DNA of 64,000 bases, taken from contig NW_013657646.1 of assembly GCF_000142905.1 (NCBI RefSeq), forward strand, positions 62,001-126,000. Direction: 5' to 3'. Below are positions 29,778 through 62,096 of this stretch, piece after piece. The notes under the pieces are model-generated. The model saw only the letters and a list, made by a program, of their open reading frames with translations, was not told the origin of the DNA and did no database searches. The stretch is from Thecamonas trahens ATCC 50062 (Eukaryota; Protista; Apusomonadida). Both the position numbers and the translations under genes were made by a program. Position 1 is the first letter of the stretch. Every line of letters starts with the position of its first letter.

Positions 29778-30309
29778 ACGCGGACGTGGACGTGGGCGCG
29801 GGCGCGGGCGGAGTAGCTCGTCGCGGGCAAGCTCGGCGTCGCGGCCGTCGAAGCGGCAGAAGACCTTGGGCAGGAAGAAGCGTGGCGGCGAGTCTGACGA
29901 TGACGACGGTGGTGAGTCTTCGGGTGCAGGGCCGATTGCGCAGTGGCGGGCCAAGGCGCAGGCGATGATCGAGGAGCTTCGCCAGGTGACGGTCGAGGAG
30001 GGCGAGGGTGACGAGGCGTTCTCCCGGACACTCTCGGACCCGTTCGAGGTCCTCCCGTCCAAGGCCCTCTACGCCGATTACTACCGGTTCATCAAGCGGC
30101 CGCGCAGTCTCCAGCAGATCATGGCCAAGCTCGAGACGTCGCGATTCAAGACGTGGCGCGCGTTTGTCGCCGACGTCCGGCTCATCTTTACCAATGCCAT
30201 GGCCTACAATCGTGAGGACTCGAACATCTACCAGGATGCCGTCCGGCTCCTCTCAGCCTTTGAAGACATTGTCGAGCGCGACGGCGTGCCTGTCGCAAGC
30301 TCGACGTGA
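25831..30309 (+). CDS. SNF2: SWI/SNF ATPase SNF2/BRM (SMARCA2/4-like). Exons 25831-25896 and 26590-30309.
   Basis: QLQ, HSA, GILADEMGLGKT, DEGH, STRAGGLGLN, QAQDRAHRIGQ, SnAC, RG repeat, bromodomain. Phase-0 GTATGT..TAG intron. Confidence 0.95.
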
Positions 30310-30926
30310 AGAGCACGGGATGGATGGTAAACTTTGCTTTGGTCTTGTGGCGTCGCAGCTGTTTTATTGTTCGATGCTTGCTTACGGGGCGAGGATCGAG
30401 TCCTACGGATAGGGGGGGGGGGAGCGAGTGAGTGAGTGAGTGTGGTGGTGGTGGTGGGGGGGGGTTATGTGGCATCTAGGATAAGCAGATGAGGCTGATG
30501 CTCTAGGCGGAGCGGGGCAGGGTAGACCAAGGTAGGAGAAAAGCCGCGACTGAAGCGACAGCAGTGAGCAGTCCACAGCCAAAGGCAGAGCCAGCAGCAG
30601 CCTGCAGTCCCAAGCACCCAGTCCCAAGACCGAGGCAGTTCCGTCAGCAGCGGCTAGCATCAAACGTCCATCACACCAGCCAAGATCTCGAGCCCAAGCC
30701 ATCATTCAGCCTAACCAAGCCACCATCCTTGCCCAAGCCATGGCGGCAACACACAGTGTGCAACCAAATCCATCCAAAGCCAGCAGCACAGTAATCCACC
30801 ATCGACGACCAAGTCACCACACTTCCCCGAATCCATGGCCACAGCAGCCACCAAGCGACGAGGCAATTGGTGGCGGTGGGGAGGGGGGGGATAGGGGGGG
30901 GGGGGGGGAGGGAGGTGTTCGTGTGC

Positions 30927-31685
30927 NNNNNNNNNNNNNNNNNNNNNNNNNNNNNNNNNNNNNNNNNNNNNNNNNNNNNNNNNNNNNNNNNNNNNNNNNN
31001 NNNNNNNNNNNNNNNNNNNNNNNNNNNNNNNNNNNNNNNNNNNNNNNNNNNNNNNNNNNNNNNNNNNNNNNNNNNNNNNNNNNNNNNNNNNNNNNNNNNN
31101 NNNNNNNNNNNNNNNNNNNNNNNNNNNNNNNNNNNNNNNNNNNNNNNNNNNNNNNNNNNNNNNNNNNNNNNNNNNNNNNNNNNNNNNNNNNNNNNNNNNN
31201 NNNNNNNNNNNNNNNNNNNNNNNNNNNNNNNNNNNNNNNNNNNNNNNNNNNNNNNNNNNNNNNNNNNNNNNNNNNNNNNNNNNNNNNNNNNNNNNNNNNN
31301 NNNNNNNNNNNNNNNNNNNNNNNNNNNNNNNNNNNNNNNNNNNNNNNNNNNNNNNNNNNNNNNNNNNNNNNNNNNNNNNNNNNNNNNNNNNNNNNNNNNN
31401 NNNNNNNNNNNNNNNNNNNNNNNNNNNNNNNNNNNNNNNNNNNNNNNNNNNNNNNNNNNNNNNNNNNNNNNNNNNNNNNNNNNNNNNNNNNNNNNNNNNN
31501 NNNNNNNNNNNNNNNNNNNNNNNNNNNNNNNNNNNNNNNNNNNNNNNNNNNNNNNNNNNNNNNNNNNNNNNNNNNNNNNNNNNNNNNNNNNNNNNNNNNN
31601 NNNNNNNNNNNNNNNNNNNNNNNNNNNNNNNNNNNNNNNNNNNNNNNNNNNNNNNNNNNNNNNNNNNNNNNNNNNNNNNNNNNNN
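30927..31685. other. Assembly gap (N run)
   Basis: Run of Ns flanked by poly-G and poly-C tracts. Confidence 1.
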
Positions 31686-32211
31686 CGTCCACTCCCCCAC
31701 TCGTCCCACTCCCCCGACTCGTCCCACCTCCCCCCCATCGTCCCACTTTCCCCCCCTCCCTCTTCCCCCCCGATCGTCTGCAACATCAAGCATATCTCGA
31801 CCATTCGAGCCCCTGTGCCACAGTACTGAGCGCACGATAGCCATGAGTGACCGAGTCCGGACTCGAGCCCCCATCGAGCGTCGCCCAGTTTGCGACGAGC
31901 GGACGCTGATCACGGAGCAGCTCGAGGTGGGCATACTCGACGCCACGGGTGTGGAGGAAGAGGTTGGACATTAGGCGAGGCAAACATGCCTGGGCACCCG
32001 AAGAAGAAGGCTTTCTCCACCTTGGGTTCTCCACAGACCTCTCCTGTGCGGGTACGTGACGTACCAGGCCCATGACTGTTCCCCCGTCTGCCTGGCGCCA
32101 AACAGACTCACCTTGGAACACGTTGCGTTTATCGATGACTTTATCAATGGCGGCGATCGGGGGGGGGGGGGGGGACCATCTCTGGCGATCATTGCTGGCG
32201 AACACTACTGA

Positions 32212-35063: not shown

Positions 35064-35895
35064 ATCTTGCTTCCTTGGCTTCTGTCTTGCTCCTTCCGCT
35101 CTCTTGCTTCCAACTCGGTCCTTCACAATAGTAAAATGCCTTCCTTCCCCTTGGCTACCTCAACAAAGCTTCCCGACTGCTCCCACCTACTTCCTCCCAA
35201 GCTGCCGCTCCGAGCGAGAGACACGTGGTTGCTCCCGCTCGCACCGTTCGAATTTCGTTGCTCAAAAAGCCTTTCATTCCAGCCGACCGCGAAAAAAAAA
35301 ATAATGGTCGTTGCCTCGTTTCGGGTTGGTTGGCCACCCTCCGCTCATTTGGTTCCTATATTTTTTCTCGTCGCACATGCAGCTCAGGCTTGGTGGACTG
35401 ACGTTCAGAAGTGTTTATGGGTGCGGTAGTCATGGGAGGGATATGTGTGTGAAGGGTATAAATAAAGGATGTAGCGCAGCTGGTTGGTGTGGGATGCGGT
35501 GCTATAGGGAGGCGAGGAGGAGGGAGTGCATAGGCGGGGCATTGGCTTGCCGAGGGAAAATTTAGCCGCTACCGTCGCGAGGGTGTTCGGCAACAACGAG
35601 CTCACCAGGGCGAATAGCGGTAGGCAGTTAAATCCGCAAGTCTTGCGCGTCTTTGCTAGGGTGTTGCCACTCCCTAAAGTGCTCTCATCTCTTTGTTGTG
35701 CTTATCATACAGACGTGACAGAAAGAAGACCCTGTTCGGCGTTTCTCAAACTACCTTTCAATTTTTCCCCCGCCCCCTCCCCTGCCATTGTCCCACGCCC
35801 GGGTTGTGGGCGGGATGAGTCGAGCTCTCCCAAATCGAGCTCGACTCACGCCCCTGCTGCGAGAGACGGCAGCACCACTCACCGTCGTCCTTGGC

Positions 35896-38034
35896 ATGCA
35901 GGTCGACTACCTTGTACTTGGTGGAACAGTGGTGGACGGGCTCGGTGGGGAGCCTGTGGTGGCTGACGTGGCCATTGCTCGCGGGCGGGTCGTCGGCGTC
36001 GGACCGGCGCTCTCCACAGCGTACACTGTCGCCGATCCGTCCACCGATCTCATCGATGCATCGGGTCTGCTTGTCCTCCCTGGCCTCATTGACACCCACG
36101 CCCACGACGACTCGGTCCTCCTCCACCCGCATCCGCCAGCTCCTCGTGCCGCAGCTGCGCCTGTCCCTAGTCCAGCGGCCGATGATGGCGGCATCGATGC
36201 ACATCATCCTCTGCTCCCAAAGGTGGCTCAGGGCGTGACGACGGTCATCATCGGCAACTGTGGCATCTCGCTAGCTCCGCTCAACGCAGCAGCGTCGTGC
36301 ACATGTGGTGCTGCGGATGGCGAGGTGTACAGCTGCACCTGCTCGCCGCTGCCGTCGCCGATGTACATCCTCGGCCCGCGAGCACGCTACTCGTTCGACT
36401 CGATGGATGCGTACATTGCTGCGCTAGACGCTGCCGAGCTACCAGTCAACGTCGGAGTGTTGGTGGGTCACGCTTCGCTCCGTGCCCGCGCCATGGGCGA
36501 AGACGCGCTGGTCACCCGACCCGCCAACGCTGATGAGATGGCGGCTATGCAGAGCAGCCTAGCTGAAATGGGCGCAGCGGGCCAGGTCCTCGGCCTCTCC
36601 ACCGGTTTGTACTACGCCATCGGTGCACCGGCACCGACCGAAGAAGTGGTGGCGCTTGCTGCGACCCTGGCCAATGCCTCGAATGGGGCTGCGGTCTACA
36701 CCACACACCTCCGCGACGAGACGTCGGGCGTCGAGACTGCGCTCGACGAGGCCATTGCCATTGCCGATGCGGCCGGTGCCCACCTCGTTGTGTCGCACGT
36801 CAAAGCTGCAGGCTCGGACAACTGGGGCAAAGGACCGGCACTGGTGGAGAAGCTGACCAACGCAGCAGCGGCAGCGCAAGCTGCCGGGCGCAACGTTGCC
36901 TTTGACGTCTACCCCTACACCGCGAGCTCAACTCATCTCTCGGCACCGCACATCCGGCGGTCATCGTCGTCACTTTTGGCCTGGTCGGCGGTCGCACCGC
37001 ACTTGGCTGGCGCTGAGATCCTCGATGCGGCGGCGCAGCTTGGTCCCGAAGGAGCGCCGCCGCCGACGCCCGAGCAGGCAGTCGCTGCGCTCGAGCCCGG
37101 CGGTGGCATCTACTTTCAGATCGACGACGGTGACCTGGAGACGCTCCTGGCGTGTCCGCTGGCCATGGTCGGCTCGGACGGACTGCCTCTCGACTCGCGG
37201 CCGCATCCGCGGCTGTACGGCACCTTTACGAGGGTGCTCGCCAAGTACGCGGCGGCCGACGACGGGCTGCTCCCGCTGGCCGAGGCAGTCCGGCGGATGA
37301 CCTCGCTACCGGCACAGACCTTCGGCCTCGTCGACCGCGGCTCGCTTACAGTCGGCGCGTTTGCCGACCTCGTCGTTGTTGACCGTACAGCGCTTACTGA
37401 GAGGGCGACGTATGAGGAGCCACGGGCGACGCCAGCAGGCGTGCACTACGTCTTTGTCAACGGCGAGCCGGTGGTGCGCGCAGGCGGTGCGCCGCCCGCG
37501 CGCATCTTGGCCCATCCGGGCATGGTCCTCAAGCGACCGGCAGCGGTCCATGTGGCACGGATGAAGGAGGCACTGCGGGTGGCGGCCGAGGCGCCGCTCG
37601 TGAGCGAGACGCCGGTCGGCGCGGCATGGTTCGACGACCGTACCGGCGCGTTGGTCGCCACCGGGCACAACCGGACGGTGGCGTCGCGCAATGCGACTCT
37701 TCACGCCGAACTTGTGGCTCTCGGCGAGCTCGAGGCCGAGCTTGGATCGGCCGAGGCACTTGCGGCGCTAGCGCCGCACCTGCACCTTTACGTCACGCTC
37801 GAGCCGTGCGGCATGTGCTTCTCGGCGCTGCGCGAGCTCGGCGTAGGCGCCATCCACTACGGCGCAGCCAACCCGCGGTTCGGCGGCGGGACGGTGCTCA
37901 ACCTCAACGCCGAAGCCGCCGCCATTCCCTGCGTCGGCGGCGTCTGCCGCGACGACGCTGTCGAGCTTCTCAAGTCGTTTTACGCGACCCAGAACCCCGC
38001 GACGGCCGGCATTCACGAGACGACACAGGCATAG
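35896..38034 (+). CDS. Fusion of N-acyl-D-amino-acid deacylase (amidohydrolase) and ADAT2/Tad2-like tRNA adenosine deaminase
   Basis: PGLIDTHAHDD, GNCG, HLRDE, SHVK, GSDG, PHPRLYGTF, then RNATLHAE, VTLEPCGMC, YGAANPRFGG, LLKSFYATQNP in one stop-free frame. Confidence 0.9.
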   Translation: MQVDYLVLGGTVVDGLGGEPVVADVAIARGRVVGVGPALSTAYTVADPSTDLIDASGLLVLPGLIDTHAHDDSVLLHPHPPAPRAAAAPVPSPAADDGGIDAHHPLLPKVAQGVTTVIIGNCGISLAPLNAAASCTCGAADGEVYSCTCSPLPSPMYILGPRARYSFDSMDAYIAALDAAELPVNVGVLVGHASLRARAMGEDALVTRPANADEMAAMQSSLAEMGAAGQVLGLSTGLYYAIGAPAPTEEVVALAATLANASNGAAVYTTHLRDETSGVETALDEAIAIADAAGAHLVVSHVKAAGSDNWGKGPALVEKLTNAAAAAQAAGRNVAFDVYPYTASSTHLSAPHIRRSSSSLLAWSAVAPHLAGAEILDAAAQLGPEGAPPPTPEQAVAALEPGGGIYFQIDDGDLETLLACPLAMVGSDGLPLDSRPHPRLYGTFTRVLAKYAAADDGLLPLAEAVRRMTSLPAQTFGLVDRGSLTVGAFADLVVVDRTALTERATYEEPRATPAGVHYVFVNGEPVVRAGGAPPARILAHPGMVLKRPAAVHVARMKEALRVAAEAPLVSETPVGAAWFDDRTGALVATGHNRTVASRNATLHAELVALGELEAELGSAEALAALAPHLHLYVTLEPCGMCFSALRELGVGAIHYGAANPRFGGGTVLNLNAEAAAIPCVGGVCRDDAVELLKSFYATQNPATAGIHETTQA

Positions 38035-40004
38035 CCAACGTCGGCATAGTCCGCCCCGTCATCGTCATCATCATCGTCATCACTTCCGCCGGCGGTGTTG
38101 AGACCGTTGTCGCCGGCAGCACTGCTGCCCACGGGGGAGGTGTCGGCGGCGGGGATGGCGAGAAGCGACTCGGCTGACAGTGCGAGGGTGATCTCGTCGC
38201 GGACCGAGGCGAGTGTTGCGTGGTCCTTGAACACCATGCGGCAGGCAAAGCCGGTGCCGAGTGGCCCAGCGTCGAGGGTGTCTGTCCACGACGCGACCGG
38301 CTCATCCGGGACGGAGACGCCGGCGAGGACGGCCGAGGCGGTGCGGGAGCGGCGGCGGGCGGAGCGGTCGCCGGCAAGGGCCGGGCTGACGACGTCGTAG
38401 TGGGCGTGGGTGGTAAAGACGTCAAGCACGTAGAGCTTAGCTGCAGCAGCAGATGCGTCTGACGACGAGGCAGCCGGAGGCTCGGCTTCGCCATCGGCGA
38501 CAATCTCCGAGGCGTCGGCGTCGCCGTCGACGCCCAGCAAGCGGCGGGTATCGACGACGCGGACCGAGCGCAGCGGAAGGCGGCGCGGGCCGCGGGCAAA
38601 CACCGCGTGGGCCTTGTACCGCTCGACCTTTTTGAGGCGCTTGGTAGTGTGCTTGGTGACCACCAGCATGTCGTCGAGGACGTACAGCTTGCGGTCCGGC
38701 TTGGAGATGGACGAGTCGAGCCACGGCGGCGAGACGACAAAGATGTTGCGGAGGACGGAGCGAAAGGCATCGGTCCAGGCCTGAGCGTCAGACGGCGAGT
38801 TGGCGACAAGTGTGAGGCCGCGGGAGAGGGTGGCGAGGTGCAGGGTGTTGGCGGCCGGGAGTGAGAGGGCGACGACGTCTGTGAGGACAACGACACCTTC
38901 GGCAGGTGCGGTCGCGGTCTCGGCCTCGGACTTCCAGAAGACCAGCTGGCCGTTGGCGTGAAGCCGGAACCAGCGCTCGTTGTAGGTACGTGCGCTAGGA
39001 GTCGTGGCCATGCCGAGCATGCCCTCAAGGACGACAGCACGGCCGGCGGCGAGGGACTTTGACGACCTCGTGTCGCGGCGGCGGGCGATCTCGGCCGAAC
39101 GGACGGCGTCCCAGGTGGCCAGTGCACCCGGAGCCACCGGCGGCGGCGGAATGTGGACCACCACGGCGACATCGTCGACGGTCAGTCGCGCCCGATGGGT
39201 TGACGCACTCAGCGACGCGGCAAGATTGGGCGGGAGGTCGACAAAGGTGGCCGCCAGCTGCGCAAACTTCTCGCGCGCATCTTGTATGTGGCGGGCTTCG
39301 TTGAGCGAGGCGGCAAAAGCCTCGACGGCGGCGTTGGCAGCCGCAAGTGGGCGGGCGTCAGCGTGGCTGGCGGGCGTCCGCTTGACCAGGTCCTTGAGCA
39401 GAAGCAGATACCGTGGAATGCGCTGGATGGGGGTAAGGAGGAGGGCCGACAAGTCGTAGGCCATGGCGTTGATCATGGGCGCATCGGACCCAGCAGCAGC
39501 AGTGAGAGCTGCAACTTCGTCGGCGACAGCGGCCTTGACAAAGGCCTTGAACTTGGACCCTGTCTTCTTTGCGGCCATGAGATGCTTCAACCGGGCCTGA
39601 GCCGCTTCGTTGCGCGTGATGACACGAGTGTACGGGGCGAGCATGGGATTGAGAAAGCGAGGCGAGAAGATGGGCCCCAGTTTTGTGCGATCCGAGAAGC
39701 GAGTAAGGCGAGATTTGAGATGAGAGCGAAGACTTGCATGCAGGGCGATGAGATCCTCCACATCATCAAAGAACAGATCAACATCATCCATAGTCATGCC
39801 CAGCTCTGCCAGGGCCTTCTTCTCCAAGCCACGAAACGGTTTGCCAAAGACTCTCAACATAGTCTCCAACCCCTTAATATACGTCTCTTCCGTCGCCAGC
39901 ATCTCCACAGCAATCTGTTCCCGTGCCGCCGTCGACGGGCAATCACGAGTTGAGCTCGGAGGCGGCGGAGGGCGCTCTTCCCCGGACGACGACGAGTTTC
40001 CCAT
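38013..40004 (-). CDS. Dbl-family RhoGEF (DH plus PH domains)
   Basis: EMLATEETYIKGL and LLTPIQRIPRYLLLLKDL followed by PH domains. Starts MGNSSS and ends CVVS. Confidence 0.9.
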   Translation of the reverse strand: MGNSSSSGEERPPPPPSSTRDCPSTAAREQIAVEMLATEETYIKGLETMLRVFGKPFRGLEKKALAELGMTMDDVDLFFDDVEDLIALHASLRSHLKSRLTRFSDRTKLGPIFSPRFLNPMLAPYTRVITRNEAAQARLKHLMAAKKTGSKFKAFVKAAVADEVAALTAAAGSDAPMINAMAYDLSALLLTPIQRIPRYLLLLKDLVKRTPASHADARPLAAANAAVEAFAASLNEARHIQDAREKFAQLAATFVDLPPNLAASLSASTHRARLTVDDVAVVVHIPPPPVAPGALATWDAVRSAEIARRRDTRSSKSLAAGRAVVLEGMLGMATTPSARTYNERWFRLHANGQLVFWKSEAETATAPAEGVVVLTDVVALSLPAANTLHLATLSRGLTLVANSPSDAQAWTDAFRSVLRNIFVVSPPWLDSSISKPDRKLYVLDDMLVVTKHTTKRLKKVERYKAHAVFARGPRRLPLRSVRVVDTRRLLGVDGDADASEIVADGEAEPPAASSSDASAAAAKLYVLDVFTTHAHYDVVSPALAGDRSARRRSRTASAVLAGVSVPDEPVASWTDTLDAGPLGTGFACRMVFKDHATLASVRDEITLALSAESLLAIPAADTSPVGSSAAGDNGLNTAGGSDDDDDDDDGADYADVGYACVVS

Positions 40005-40365
40005 GGCCAGAGGTAGACGGCGAGCGAAGTGGTGAACAAGGTGAGTGAATGAGTGCGCGCGTGTGTGTGTGGGGAGATGGAGTGTATGGGTGTGTGTGGG
40101 AGAGGTGGTATGTGTGTGAGTGTGTGTATGTGTTGTGGGGGTTGGGGGGGAGAAGGTGGTGCCTGTTGCGTCTGTCAATGTCATGATTTTGACGGGCGGA
40201 GAGCAGAGGGCGACATTCCTCAGGATCGCTTTTTCTTATGCCGACGGGAGGTCATCCTCCCCTGGCAGCATCGGGATGCACTCTGCTCGCGGTTTGCGGC
40301 ACGTGTGGTGCATGTTACTTATCATTGCTGTGTGGTGGCTCTGGCGGGGGCGCACCTCCATTGAT

Positions 40366-42332: not shown

Positions 42333-43913
42333 ATGGCCACACCAGAGACACGAAAGCTGTTCAAACAGCTGCAAGGCATCAACAACAACAACGTAAGTCT
42401 ACCCAGAGCCACAGCAGAACATGCTCTACCTGCACATCCTCTTTCCCCCCGAGTGCAGTTGGCCATATCGACAAAAGGGTGGATGTGCGTACCGGCGTGT
42501 GCCGCAGGTCACAGAAGGTCTACACCTCCCCCTCCCNNNNNNNNNNNNNNNNNNNNNNNNNNNNNNNNNNNNNNNNNNNNNNNNNNNNNNNNNNNNNNNN
42601 NNNNNNNNNNNNNNNNNNNNNNNNNNNNNNNNNNNNNNNNNNNNNNNNNNNNNNNNNNNNNNNNNNNNNNNNNNNNNNNNNNNNNNNNNNNNNNNNNNNN
42701 NNNNNNNNNNNNNNNNNNNNNNNNNNNNNNNNNNNNNNNNNNNNNNNNNNNNNNNNNNNNNNNNNNNNNNNNNNNNNNNNNNNNNNNNNNNNNNNNNNNN
42801 NNNNNNNNNNNNNNNNNNNNCATCACCGCCCGTAGAATGCGCTGCGACAGGTTCGCCAGACTCAGATCGGATGCTCGCGCCTGTCGACGCGCGTGGGGTG
42901 TCCAAGAGCAAGAGCAAGAGCAAGAGCAAGAGAGTGCTTGTGAGCACGCGCGCGCGCGTGTGTGTGTGTGTGCTCATGTACTGGAAGCGTGCGACGGCAT
43001 ATCACTCACCTGATGACCCGTTGATGTTGGTCGTTGATGTTGGTTGTTGATGTTGGCCGGGACAGAGTTCTGCGCATCGTTCCAGGGCATGGAGGGCGTG
43101 TCGCTCGAGGCCAAGTACGCATCGTGGGGCGCGTCGTTGTATCGTGACAAAATCCGGACACTTGCGGATGGCGCTGGCTCGTGGTCGCTGGCCGAGGCTC
43201 AGTTGCGGATTCCCGAGCCCGCACCGCTGCCATCGCCGTCGATGGGCTCGTCGCTCGACTCGCCGGCCGGCGAGGCTGCAGCCCGGCCGGCCATGCAGGG
43301 CTTTGGTTCGGACGGGCGCACACATAATCCCGACGAGGGCAACGGATCCGGTGGCTCGTTCTTCTCGTCGATCGCCTCGGGCTGGTCGTCGTTTGCCGCC
43401 AAGGCTACGGTGGCGGCCAAGTCGGCGTCCAAGGTCATTGCCGAAAAGTCGACTGTTGCCGCCACCAAGGTCAAGTCGTCGTCGCAAAAGGGATGGTCCT
43501 CGGTCCGGGCCTTTATCGATGCCCGCTCGCAGGGCGAGGGCGGCGAGCCGGGCGCGGCTAACCCCGAACTGTACGAGGTCGATCCGTCCGATCAGGGCGT
43601 TTCGGCCCCGGAGCCGTCGACTTCCTCCGCCCCGCCGACGGTTACCGAGGTCGAGATCGCTGAGCAGGATGCTCGGCTTGCTGCACTCGGCCTAGGCGGC
43701 CCGCCGCCGTCGTCAGAGCCGGCCTCCACTAGCGATCCCACCACAGACTTTTTCTCCAACCTTGCTGCAAGCCCTGCGCCTGCCGCAACGACGACGACAA
43801 CCACCACAACCACGGCGACAGCCTCCTCTTTGGGCTCTCCCACTGCCAACACCCCGACTGCTGTCGCTGTCGCCGACGATGGTGATGTTGACGACTGGAA
43901 TACAGCCTGGTGA
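42333..43913 (+). CDS. ARFGAP1: ARF GTPase-activating protein ArfGAP1/Gcs1. Exon 42333-42392, zinc-finger exon(s) presumably in the gap, last exon 43066-43913.
   Basis: MATPETRKLFKQLQGINNNN|GTAAGT; KYAS..ASLYRDKIRTLA; MQGFGS; ALPS-like FFSSIASGWSSF. Confidence 0.8.
42537..42820. other. Assembly gap (N run)
   Basis: Run of Ns. Confidence 1.
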
Positions 43914-61429: not shown

Positions 61430-62096
61430 AGGATAAAGGTGGATGCCGGTGGCTGTGGGCAGGCTTGTTGGTGGGTGGGTGCTGTCGACGAGTTGAGTGT
61501 GTCTGTATCTGCCCAAGTCGCACTGTCTTCCCCAAGTCGCACTAGCACGGCGGTATCGCTTTCACAGTGGCAGCGGACAATTGTGACGTTTCGCTGGCGA
61601 ACGCCACGACAAGAGTCACTGCATGCAAGTCAACAGTTGCTATCGATACGGACTACTACAGCAACAGTCTACATCACCTCCACGTCCAGTAGGCTTGCAG
61701 TCCAGGTGCCACGGGAGGTACAAGCCAAGAGCGTGGCCCATACCATACTTTAAGCCAGATCTCTATGCACGGGCTCTTTCTCCGCCGACCACCTACCCCC
61801 CCCCCCCCCCCCCCGCGACTACATATATACATACCACTAGGAGGTTGTGGCAGGCCCTGTTTCATCATTTACAATCAGTGGTTCGGAGACTTCATTCCTT
61901 GCGCACATGCAAGTGCCACATTCCCGTGGCTTTGCATGTGATCTCCTCATTCGAAGCACCGAGTCCAGTCCGCGTGTGCTAGTTGCGAGATAAAGATGAG
62001 CGACTTTTGCCAGCCTGAGCACCAACCTCTCTCCACTCATCCCTCTGTCGTTCTCCCGAGAACTGCTAGTCAGAGACACACACGACACATAACACA

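Follow-up and report, generated by a model that had tools for sequence, protein, structure and literature searches.

Why would a eukaryote produce what looks like one of its tRNA-editing enzymes as the tail end of a hydrolase? The question is raised by a gene of the apusomonad Thecamonas trahens ATCC 50062 that lies on contig NW_013657646.1 (assembly GCF_000142905.1), within the 64,000-nucleotide stretch analyzed here (contig positions 62,001 to 126,000, forward strand; "the window," from whose first letter all positions below are counted). The gene appears to encode an N-acyl-D-amino-acid deacylase and, in the same reading frame, ADAT2 (Tad2), the partner of ADAT3 in the deamination of tRNA adenosine 34 (A34) to inosine (I34). 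We think it probable that apusomonads have here a genuine, conserved gene for two enzymes, in which an acquired deacylase of bacterial type became fused upstream of ADAT2 and both activities were retained and work independently of each other.

The fusion gene, its junction, and its only known relative

The fusion open reading frame (ORF) occupies positions 35896 to 38034 of the + strand, from an ATG at 35896 to a stop codon at 38032 to 38034 (712 codons plus the stop), within a frame that is free of stops from 35788 to 38034. The DNA around the junction (37480 to 38100), read directly, is continuous and contains no stop codon, frameshift, or N, which confirms the single stop-free ORF joining a deacylase to a deaminase that the original prediction, made from the sequence of the window alone, had described. 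Pfam recognizes two domains in the product, Amidohydro_3 at residues 111 to 527 (90.6 bits; cutoff, 29.7) and dCMP_cyt_deam_1 (PF00383) at residues 555 to 656 (57.3 bits; cutoff, 25). About six residues separate the last deacylase strand, PGMVLKR (residues 541 to 547), from the first deaminase helix, which begins at residue 550 in the AlphaFold2 (AF2) model. This linker (PAAVHV, residues 548 to 553; 37537 to 37554, + strand) was placed with the help of that model and of an alignment with the relative described below, in which it reads PSSTQV and has the same length.

The surrounding contig is eukaryotic and 390 kb long; the flanking genes are eukaryotic as well, with the same G+C content as the fusion gene. 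The protein held by NCBI and UniProt (P0001, 717 aa) is 100% identical to the ORF translation and is named only "N-acyl-D-amino-acid deacylase." The sole difference between the NCBI model and the plain ORF is a 7-codon exon at 35304 to 35324 that is spliced to 35902. The intron in that model is 577 nt long and ends at 35901, and an in-frame ATG inside it, at 35815, would lengthen the protein by 27 residues that resemble a presequence and include many R, L, A, and T. The relative, whose start lies two residues before VDYL, as it does in the plain Thecamonas ORF, does not conserve this extension.

That relative, P0002 (705 aa), carries the same deacylase and ADAT2 as a single ORF on a 3.3-kb ENA metagenome contig (L014) of eukaryote-like composition, which was assembled independently and derives from a different organism. 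It is 56% identical to the Thecamonas protein overall (BLASTP), 58% identical in the aligned C-terminal third, and 62% identical in the deaminase. The two proteins share the linker length, two insertions in the deacylase, and the absence of the basic KR motif with which ADAT2 normally ends. A convergent ORF downstream of P0002 is weakly similar to the C terminus of the RhoGEF-like protein encoded next to the Thecamonas gene.

No third example of the deacylase-ADAT2 architecture was found. A full-length search of 5.8 billion proteins returned only the T. trahens entry and P0002, and an exhaustive HMMER search with the deaminase domain against 1.84 billion representatives gave a single match below 1e-30, which was again P0002. 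Among JGI metagenome contigs, only the ends of bacterial deacylases matched and no further fusion appeared, and the ESM Atlas held no large cluster with this architecture. Our literature search found no paper joining Thecamonas with ADAT2 and nothing relevant on fusions between D-aminoacylases and deaminases. The earlier assertion that no such fusion was known stands with the addition of this one metagenomic sequence, which also shows that the fusion is shared by a relative. We regard the fusion as very rare, conserved in a second lineage, and, as judged from sequence, an ADAT2 ortholog in a new architecture.

ADAT2 is joined to other domains in a few predicted proteins. P0340, a single ORF of 683 aa on JGI metagenome contigs, couples ADAT2 to a BD-FAE alpha/beta-hydrolase and is thus hydrolase-joined like the Thecamonas fusion; P0281 (1265 aa) combines it with an EgtD/EgtB-like part and P0327 (1198 aa) with VPS9. 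All three have ADAT2 at the C-terminal end, as here, but their N-terminal domains are unrelated to the deacylase and they keep the KR tail. Some of them may be merged gene models.

The deaminase domain and its place in tRNA editing

The C-terminal domain (residues 554 to 712; 37555 to 38031, + strand) was assigned to the ADAT2/Tad2 type from Pfam, phmmer searches of the PDB, a family profile, and a tree. In the phmmer search, the best scores went to yeast Tad2 (88.7 bits), mouse ADAT2 (84.2 bits), and human ADAT2 (83.5 bits), whereas the best TadA-type chain reached 52 bits, named TadA chains 37 to 44 bits (Escherichia coli TadA, 43.7), and ADAT3 39.6 bits. A quick tree of the two fusion deaminase domains with 34 stand-alone ADAT2 and 24 bacterial TadA sequences split TadA from ADAT2 plus the fusions with a Shimodaira-Hasegawa-like approximate likelihood ratio test (SH-aLRT) value of 99. 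On the PDB scores and this split, a TadA origin of the domain was rejected.

Alignment locates the expected catalytic residues on the + strand: HAE (37702 to 37710) contributes zinc ligand His603 and catalytic Glu605, and PCGMC (37804 to 37818), which begins at Pro637, contributes zinc ligands Cys638 and Cys641. ADAT2 also has a eukaryote-specific arginine/tyrosine (R/Y) gate, formed by R130 and Y171 in mouse and by R159 and Y205 in Trypanosoma brucei (PMC9643335). Its counterparts in the fusion are Arg661, within NPRFGG (37876 to 37878, + strand; mouse R130), and Tyr696, within FYATQNP (37981 to 37983, + strand; mouse Y171). The motifs NATxHAE, NxRFGG, and FYxxxNP agree with the consensus of the 34 stand-alone proteins. 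Where those proteins are at least 90% conserved (31 columns), the Thecamonas domain keeps the consensus residue in 27 columns and the relative in 28; one of the conserved columns missed is the start Met. A profile built from the same 34 sequences scores 161.8 bits on the fusion, with a match that ends at profile position 164 of 178.

These results agree with the prediction that the deaminase is of ADAT2 type and not of TadA type. The companion statement, that ADAT2 is normally a small stand-alone protein, is supported by the lengths of the best 150 relatives among the 1.84 billion representatives, 144 of which have 122 to 333 residues. The nearest stand-alone relatives that carry a name are eukaryotic ADAT2 proteins (a JGI "tRNA-specific adenosine deaminase 2" and entries from Amorphochlora, Ceratiomyxa, and MMETSP). 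With the ADAT2 proteins of solved structure (7BV5, yeast; 7NZ7, mouse; 3DH1, human; 8AW3, T. brucei), the fusion shares the cytidine deaminase (CDA) fold, HAE and PCxxC, the three longer motifs, and the R/Y gate. Unlike stand-alone ADAT2, its deaminase is C-terminal to a 547-residue deacylase, lacks the NAPxxKRK tail, and lies on a long branch. Bacterial TadA (1Z3A and 2B3J), the ancestor of both ADAT2 and ADAT3, has the same catalytic chemistry and fold; unlike ADAT2, it is a homodimer specific for tRNA-Arg. By descent and core residues, the C-terminal domain is most likely this organism's ADAT2.

We searched the whole assembly in six frames with four queries, namely PF00383, PF14437, the deaminase domain, and the ADAT2 profile (E value of ≤10). 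Together they hit no more than five CDA-fold loci, of which each query recovered a subset: an FCY1-like cytosine deaminase (contig C28), a RibD-like locus (C55), a dCMP-deaminase-like locus (C17), an ADAT3-like locus (C6), and the fusion. The ADAT2 profile gave the fusion 161.8 bits and the next locus, the FCY1-like cytosine deaminase, 63 bits. No second ADAT2-type gene was found in the assembly even with this profile at an E value of ≤10, in a search sensitive enough to pick up a 30-residue fragment of ADAT3. The question raised with the original prediction, whether this is the only ADAT2 in the genome, is answered to that extent: the fusion is the only ADAT2-type gene that we found.

The expected partner, ADAT3, is encoded in the same genome (G000:C6; annotated AMSG_01640, P0408). 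This locus contains an H-L-V pseudocatalytic motif and a part reading YLCTG...PCSMC...LNHSY, for which the best matches were mouse, T. brucei, and yeast ADAT3 (47.6 to 42 bits), against 23 bits for TadA. The N-terminal part of the protein had no detectable match among solved structures; it begins with MSAAGKRQRR, a basic patch. Between the H-L-V and the YLCTG..PCSMC parts, at about positions 1370 to 1743 of the extracted locus (L005; G000:C6:454019-457108), the reading frame changes. To span this change, the AMSG_01640 model places an intron of about 35 nt there, at the cost of the conserved YLCTG motif; the frame change itself may reflect an indel in the assembly.

Among 63 tRNA matches scored, 22 are genes with A34, and they fall into seven families: Ile AAT (three genes), Ala AGC (five), Thr AGT (three), Val AAC (three), Arg ACG (four), Leu AAG (three), and Ser AGA (one). 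None of the 63 is a counterpart of these families with guanosine at position 34 (G34). Since no G34 counterpart of the A34 genes was seen among these matches and ADAT3 is encoded, the eukaryotic A34 tRNA set and the partner subunit are both present, and the fusion is the only candidate that we found for the catalytic subunit of A34 deamination.

Several tRNA genes are arranged in tight tandem arrays, at L031/L035 (G000:C39:230645-234761), L049 (G000:C32:287000-288200), and L063 (G000:C18:409000-410500). The arrays comprise five tRNA-Ala(AGC) genes at distances of about 250 to 290 nt, three tRNA-Arg(ACG) genes at distances of about 160 nt, and a mixed group of Ser genes with the anticodons AGA, TGA, CGA, and CGA.

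The end of the protein is atypical. After the FYATQNP motif, the Thecamonas sequence closes with the 11-residue tail ATAGIHETTQA (37999 to 38031, + strand), which has no Lys or Arg and no NAPxxKRK (KR) motif. Among 148 ADAT2-type representatives, nearly all have 3 to 10 Lys or Arg residues within 30 residues after FYxxxNP, in an xAPxxKRK-like arrangement, and in T. brucei this basic C-terminal motif of ADAT2 is essential for tRNA binding (PMC9643335). The tails of the two fusions resemble each other (PAxxxΦH[E/Q], where Φ is a hydrophobic residue), and we therefore read both as true coding sequence, not as an intron that was missed. Nor does the DNA downstream leave space for more coding sequence, because the convergent RhoGEF-like ORF terminates at 38013, within the final codons of the fusion gene. 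Given the absence of the KR motif, we call the domain an ADAT2 ortholog by descent with an atypical tail and not a standard member of the family. An electrostatic replacement of the tail by the N-terminal domain was considered and found to be unsupported, that domain being very acidic (net charge, -28).

The deacylase domain

The N-terminal domain (residues 1 to 547; 35896 to 37536, + strand) belongs to the N-acyl-D-amino-acid deacylase group of Amidohydro_3 according to Pfam, PDB phmmer, and an AF2/Foldseek comparison. With the N-terminal 548 residues as the query, phmmer gave 285 to 292 bits to the Klebsiella D-acylase 9G5M and the Alcaligenes D-aminoacylase 1M7J/1RJP, 281 to 285 bits to the carbohydrate deacetylase PpOngB (9KB1), and 272 bits to the N-acyl-D-glutamate deacylase 3GIP. 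The AF2 model of the whole protein has a mean predicted local distance difference test (pLDDT) value of 89.4. In Foldseek, its deacylase domain superposes on 1m7j, 1rjq, 9kb1, and 3gip with target-normalized template modeling (TM) scores of 0.94 to 0.96 and root mean square deviations of 2.0 to 3.4. The NCBIfam model PRK09061 scored 139.9 bits, under its cutoff of 340, which places the domain in the broad family and outside that bacterial subfamily model.

Alignment with 1m7j identifies a full set of candidate metal and catalytic residues, all on the + strand: H68 and H70 in HxH (36097 to 36105), Cys122 in GNCG (36259 to 36261), His271 in THLRDE (36706 to 36708), His301 in SHVK (36796 to 36798), and Asp428 in GSDG (37177 to 37179). 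They coincide with the metal-binding and catalytic residues of 1m7j, namely His67, His69, Cys96, His220, His250, and Asp366. The metagenome relative and one bacterial homolog have the same residue at each of the six positions.

Compared with the enzymes of the 1M7J group (1M7J, from Alcaligenes faecalis DA1, with 3GIP, 9G5M, and 9KB1), the fusion has the same Amidohydro_3 fold and the same six ligands, at 36% identity in the structural alignment and 272 to 292 bits by sequence. Only the fusion has a eukaryotic host, a C-terminal deaminase, and two insertions. The first insertion (residues 77 to 103; 36124 to 36204, + strand) is a low-complexity segment rich in P and A that has no equivalent in bacterial homologs, and its residues 80 to 96 have pLDDT values below 50. 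The second, CxC-x9-CxC (C135, C137, C147, and C149; residues 135 to 149; 36298 to 36342, + strand), is present in both fusions and in none of 50 bacterial homologs; it may form a small metal-binding or disulfide loop of four cysteines. It follows directly after ligand Cys122 and reads CTC..CSC in the relative. The domain is also strongly acidic (net charge, -28; isoelectric point [pI], 4.8), and most bacterial homologs are less so.

All named relatives of the deacylase domain are bacterial (Pseudomonadota), at about 38 to 44% BLAST identity. Of the original designation "D-aminoacylase," the family, the fold, and the complete ligand set were upheld, whereas a D-amino-acid substrate was not, OngB being equally similar. 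In the ESM Atlas, a bacterial cluster of 54 members (Verrucomicrobiota and others) has Peptidase_S13, a D-Ala-D-Ala carboxypeptidase, fused to the same Amidohydro_3 fold, which suggests a link of the deacylase family in bacteria to the turnover of D-amino acids or cell walls.

Proposed origin and alternative explanations

We propose that a bacterial-type deacylase gene (Amidohydro_3) was acquired and landed directly upstream of the host ADAT2 gene, and that loss of the deacylase stop codon then joined the two genes through the linker of about six residues. The ADAT2 domain would use its CDA-fold core to pair with ADAT3, the product of a separate gene (AMSG_01640), and the heterodimer would make I34 from A34 in the tRNAs of at least seven families. 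Because the KR tail is gone, the tRNA would have to be held elsewhere, mainly by the N-terminal domain of ADAT3, the R/Y gate, and further surfaces. The deacylase most likely hydrolyzes an N-acyl compound, whether an N-acyl-D-amino acid or a related sugar-acid compound, independently of tRNA editing; it is most likely still active, because the complete metal site and the fold have been kept. Fusion as such would guarantee only coexpression and 1:1 stoichiometry. The original prediction had gone further and suggested that the fusion could link wobble-inosine editing to the clean-up of D-amino acids or N-acyl-amino acids, but we found nothing that ties the two activities together.

Several points weigh against this proposal. 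The KR motif is missing from both fusions (0 Lys or Arg in the Thecamonas tail and 1 in 26 residues in that of the relative), and the acidic N-terminal domain is, from its predicted charge, no obvious substitute for it. In the deaminase tree, the stem leading to the two fusions is long (1.65 changes per site), which could mean a changed function. The conclusion that the genome has a single ADAT2 is limited by an assembly of 131 contigs with gaps, in which six-frame searches could overlook a copy broken up by many introns or hidden in a gap. As to the deacylase, a quick tree places both fusions on a single long branch that lies outside the bacteria sampled, and for that reason no donor can be named; a bacterial origin is what the named relatives point to. 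Sequence similarity does not assign a substrate either, since D-aminoacylases and the sugar-acid deacetylase OngB are equally close.

The loss of the tail could instead be tied to the gain of the deacylase, and we regard such functional coupling as unlikely. Under this explanation, the deacylase was recruited into the tRNA enzyme, either replacing the KR tail in positioning the tRNA or ADAT3 or placing I34 formation under the control of an N-acyl or D-amino-acid metabolite; it might even act on an acyl group linked to tRNA. The two known fusions both combine KR loss with the gain of the N-terminal domain, their deaminase stem is long, and the CxC..CxC insertion unique to the fusions adjoins the active-site Cys of the deacylase. 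The predicted TM score (pTM) for the whole chain is 0.89 in the AF2 model and 0.84 for the relative in the ESM Atlas model, above what would be expected for two freely linked domains, which suggests a fixed interface between the two halves; pTM, however, is an indirect measure. Against coupling, an N-terminal domain with a charge of -28 and a pI of 4.8 is unfavorable for RNA binding, and the small-molecule active site is conserved in full, as in an ordinary hydrolase. The other ADAT2 fusions, with their unrelated N-terminal domains, keep the KR tail, which argues for opportunistic fusions, and the existence of only two known sequences makes a test of covariation impossible. In its most specific form, coupling would mean that ADAT2 gave up its KR clamp when it became fixed to a deacylase with a new loop of four cysteines and that the deacylase now positions the tRNA or ADAT3 or gates I34 formation by metabolite. 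We consider that version somewhat more doubtful; if true, it would describe a natural ADAT2 that works without a motif thought to be indispensable.

It is similarly doubtful that the long protein serves as a deacylase only and that ADAT2 is supplied as a free form of about 157 residues, made from an internal transcript or by initiation at an internal ATG. The in-frame ATG noted in the original prediction is present at 37561 to 37563 (+ strand); it encodes Met556, in the first ADAT2 helix, and is kept in the relative. Three stand-alone proteins (P0288, P0307, and P0355) start at this Met, their residue 1 aligning with residue 8 of our query, so that a protein initiated there would have a complete core. 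However, the same position is a near-invariant internal helix residue, present in 33 of the 34 stand-alone ADAT2 proteins, and its conservation therefore needs no explanation as a start codon. There is no intergenic space, and with a linker of about six codons, a promoter would have to sit within the deacylase coding sequence; it is also implausible that ribosomes reach the ATG by leaky scanning through about 1.66 kb of coding sequence. Lineages that are only 56% identical have kept both the frame and the linker length, and the free form would likewise be without the KR tail.

Still less probable, in our judgment, is that the domain is a diverged paralog that no longer edits tRNA A34 and acts on another RNA, on DNA, or on a free base, the true ADAT2 being missing from the assembly or split beyond recognition. 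This explanation would account for the lost KR motif and the long branch, and an assembly of 131 contigs with N runs leaves a place for the missing gene. Yet the domain has kept the invariant residues of the ADAT2 core together with the eukaryote-specific R/Y gate, and no other ADAT2-like fragment appeared at an E value of ≤10, in searches that detected 30 residues of ADAT3. ADAT3 and the full A34 tRNA set require a partner, and the relative is in the same state. Finally, the bacterial look of the deacylase half would fit an assembly or annotation artifact, or bacterial contamination, that joined unrelated genes, but this is extremely improbable and was ruled out by a junction that is continuous without N and recurs in a metagenome contig assembled independently from another organism, by the eukaryotic flanks and matching G+C content along 390 kb, by the fusion itself, and by fusion-specific insertions that the bacterial homologs lack.

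Returning to the proposal of two retained and independent activities, part of its interest lies in the missing tail. ADAT2 and ADAT3 are essential in eukaryotes, and structural work treats the KR tail as an indispensable tRNA-binding element. Thecamonas, a free-living eukaryote with an apparently single, KR-less ADAT2 that bears a foreign enzyme of 547 residues, would thus be a natural experiment. If the fusion edits tRNA together with ADAT3, there are contexts in which the KR motif can be dispensed with and the anticodon arm must be held by something else, a result that would be notable for the tRNA modification field. The locus would also illustrate cleanly how a gene of bacterial type can become fixed in a eukaryote when it is fused to an essential one, and the foreign deacylase may have been retained because of that fusion. 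If the two halves are independent, the joining itself would be only a curiosity of domain architecture.

Two features of the surrounding window complete the description. The RhoGEF-like ORF (38013 to 40184, - strand) converges on the fusion gene, and the 3' coding ends of the two have 22 nt in common (38013 to 38034); their 3' untranslated regions must therefore overlap as well. The window also contains two N runs, which are assembly gaps, at 30927 to 31685 and at 42537 to 42820, and an apparent dip in G+C content to 0.38 at 30001 to 32000 is due to the first of them.

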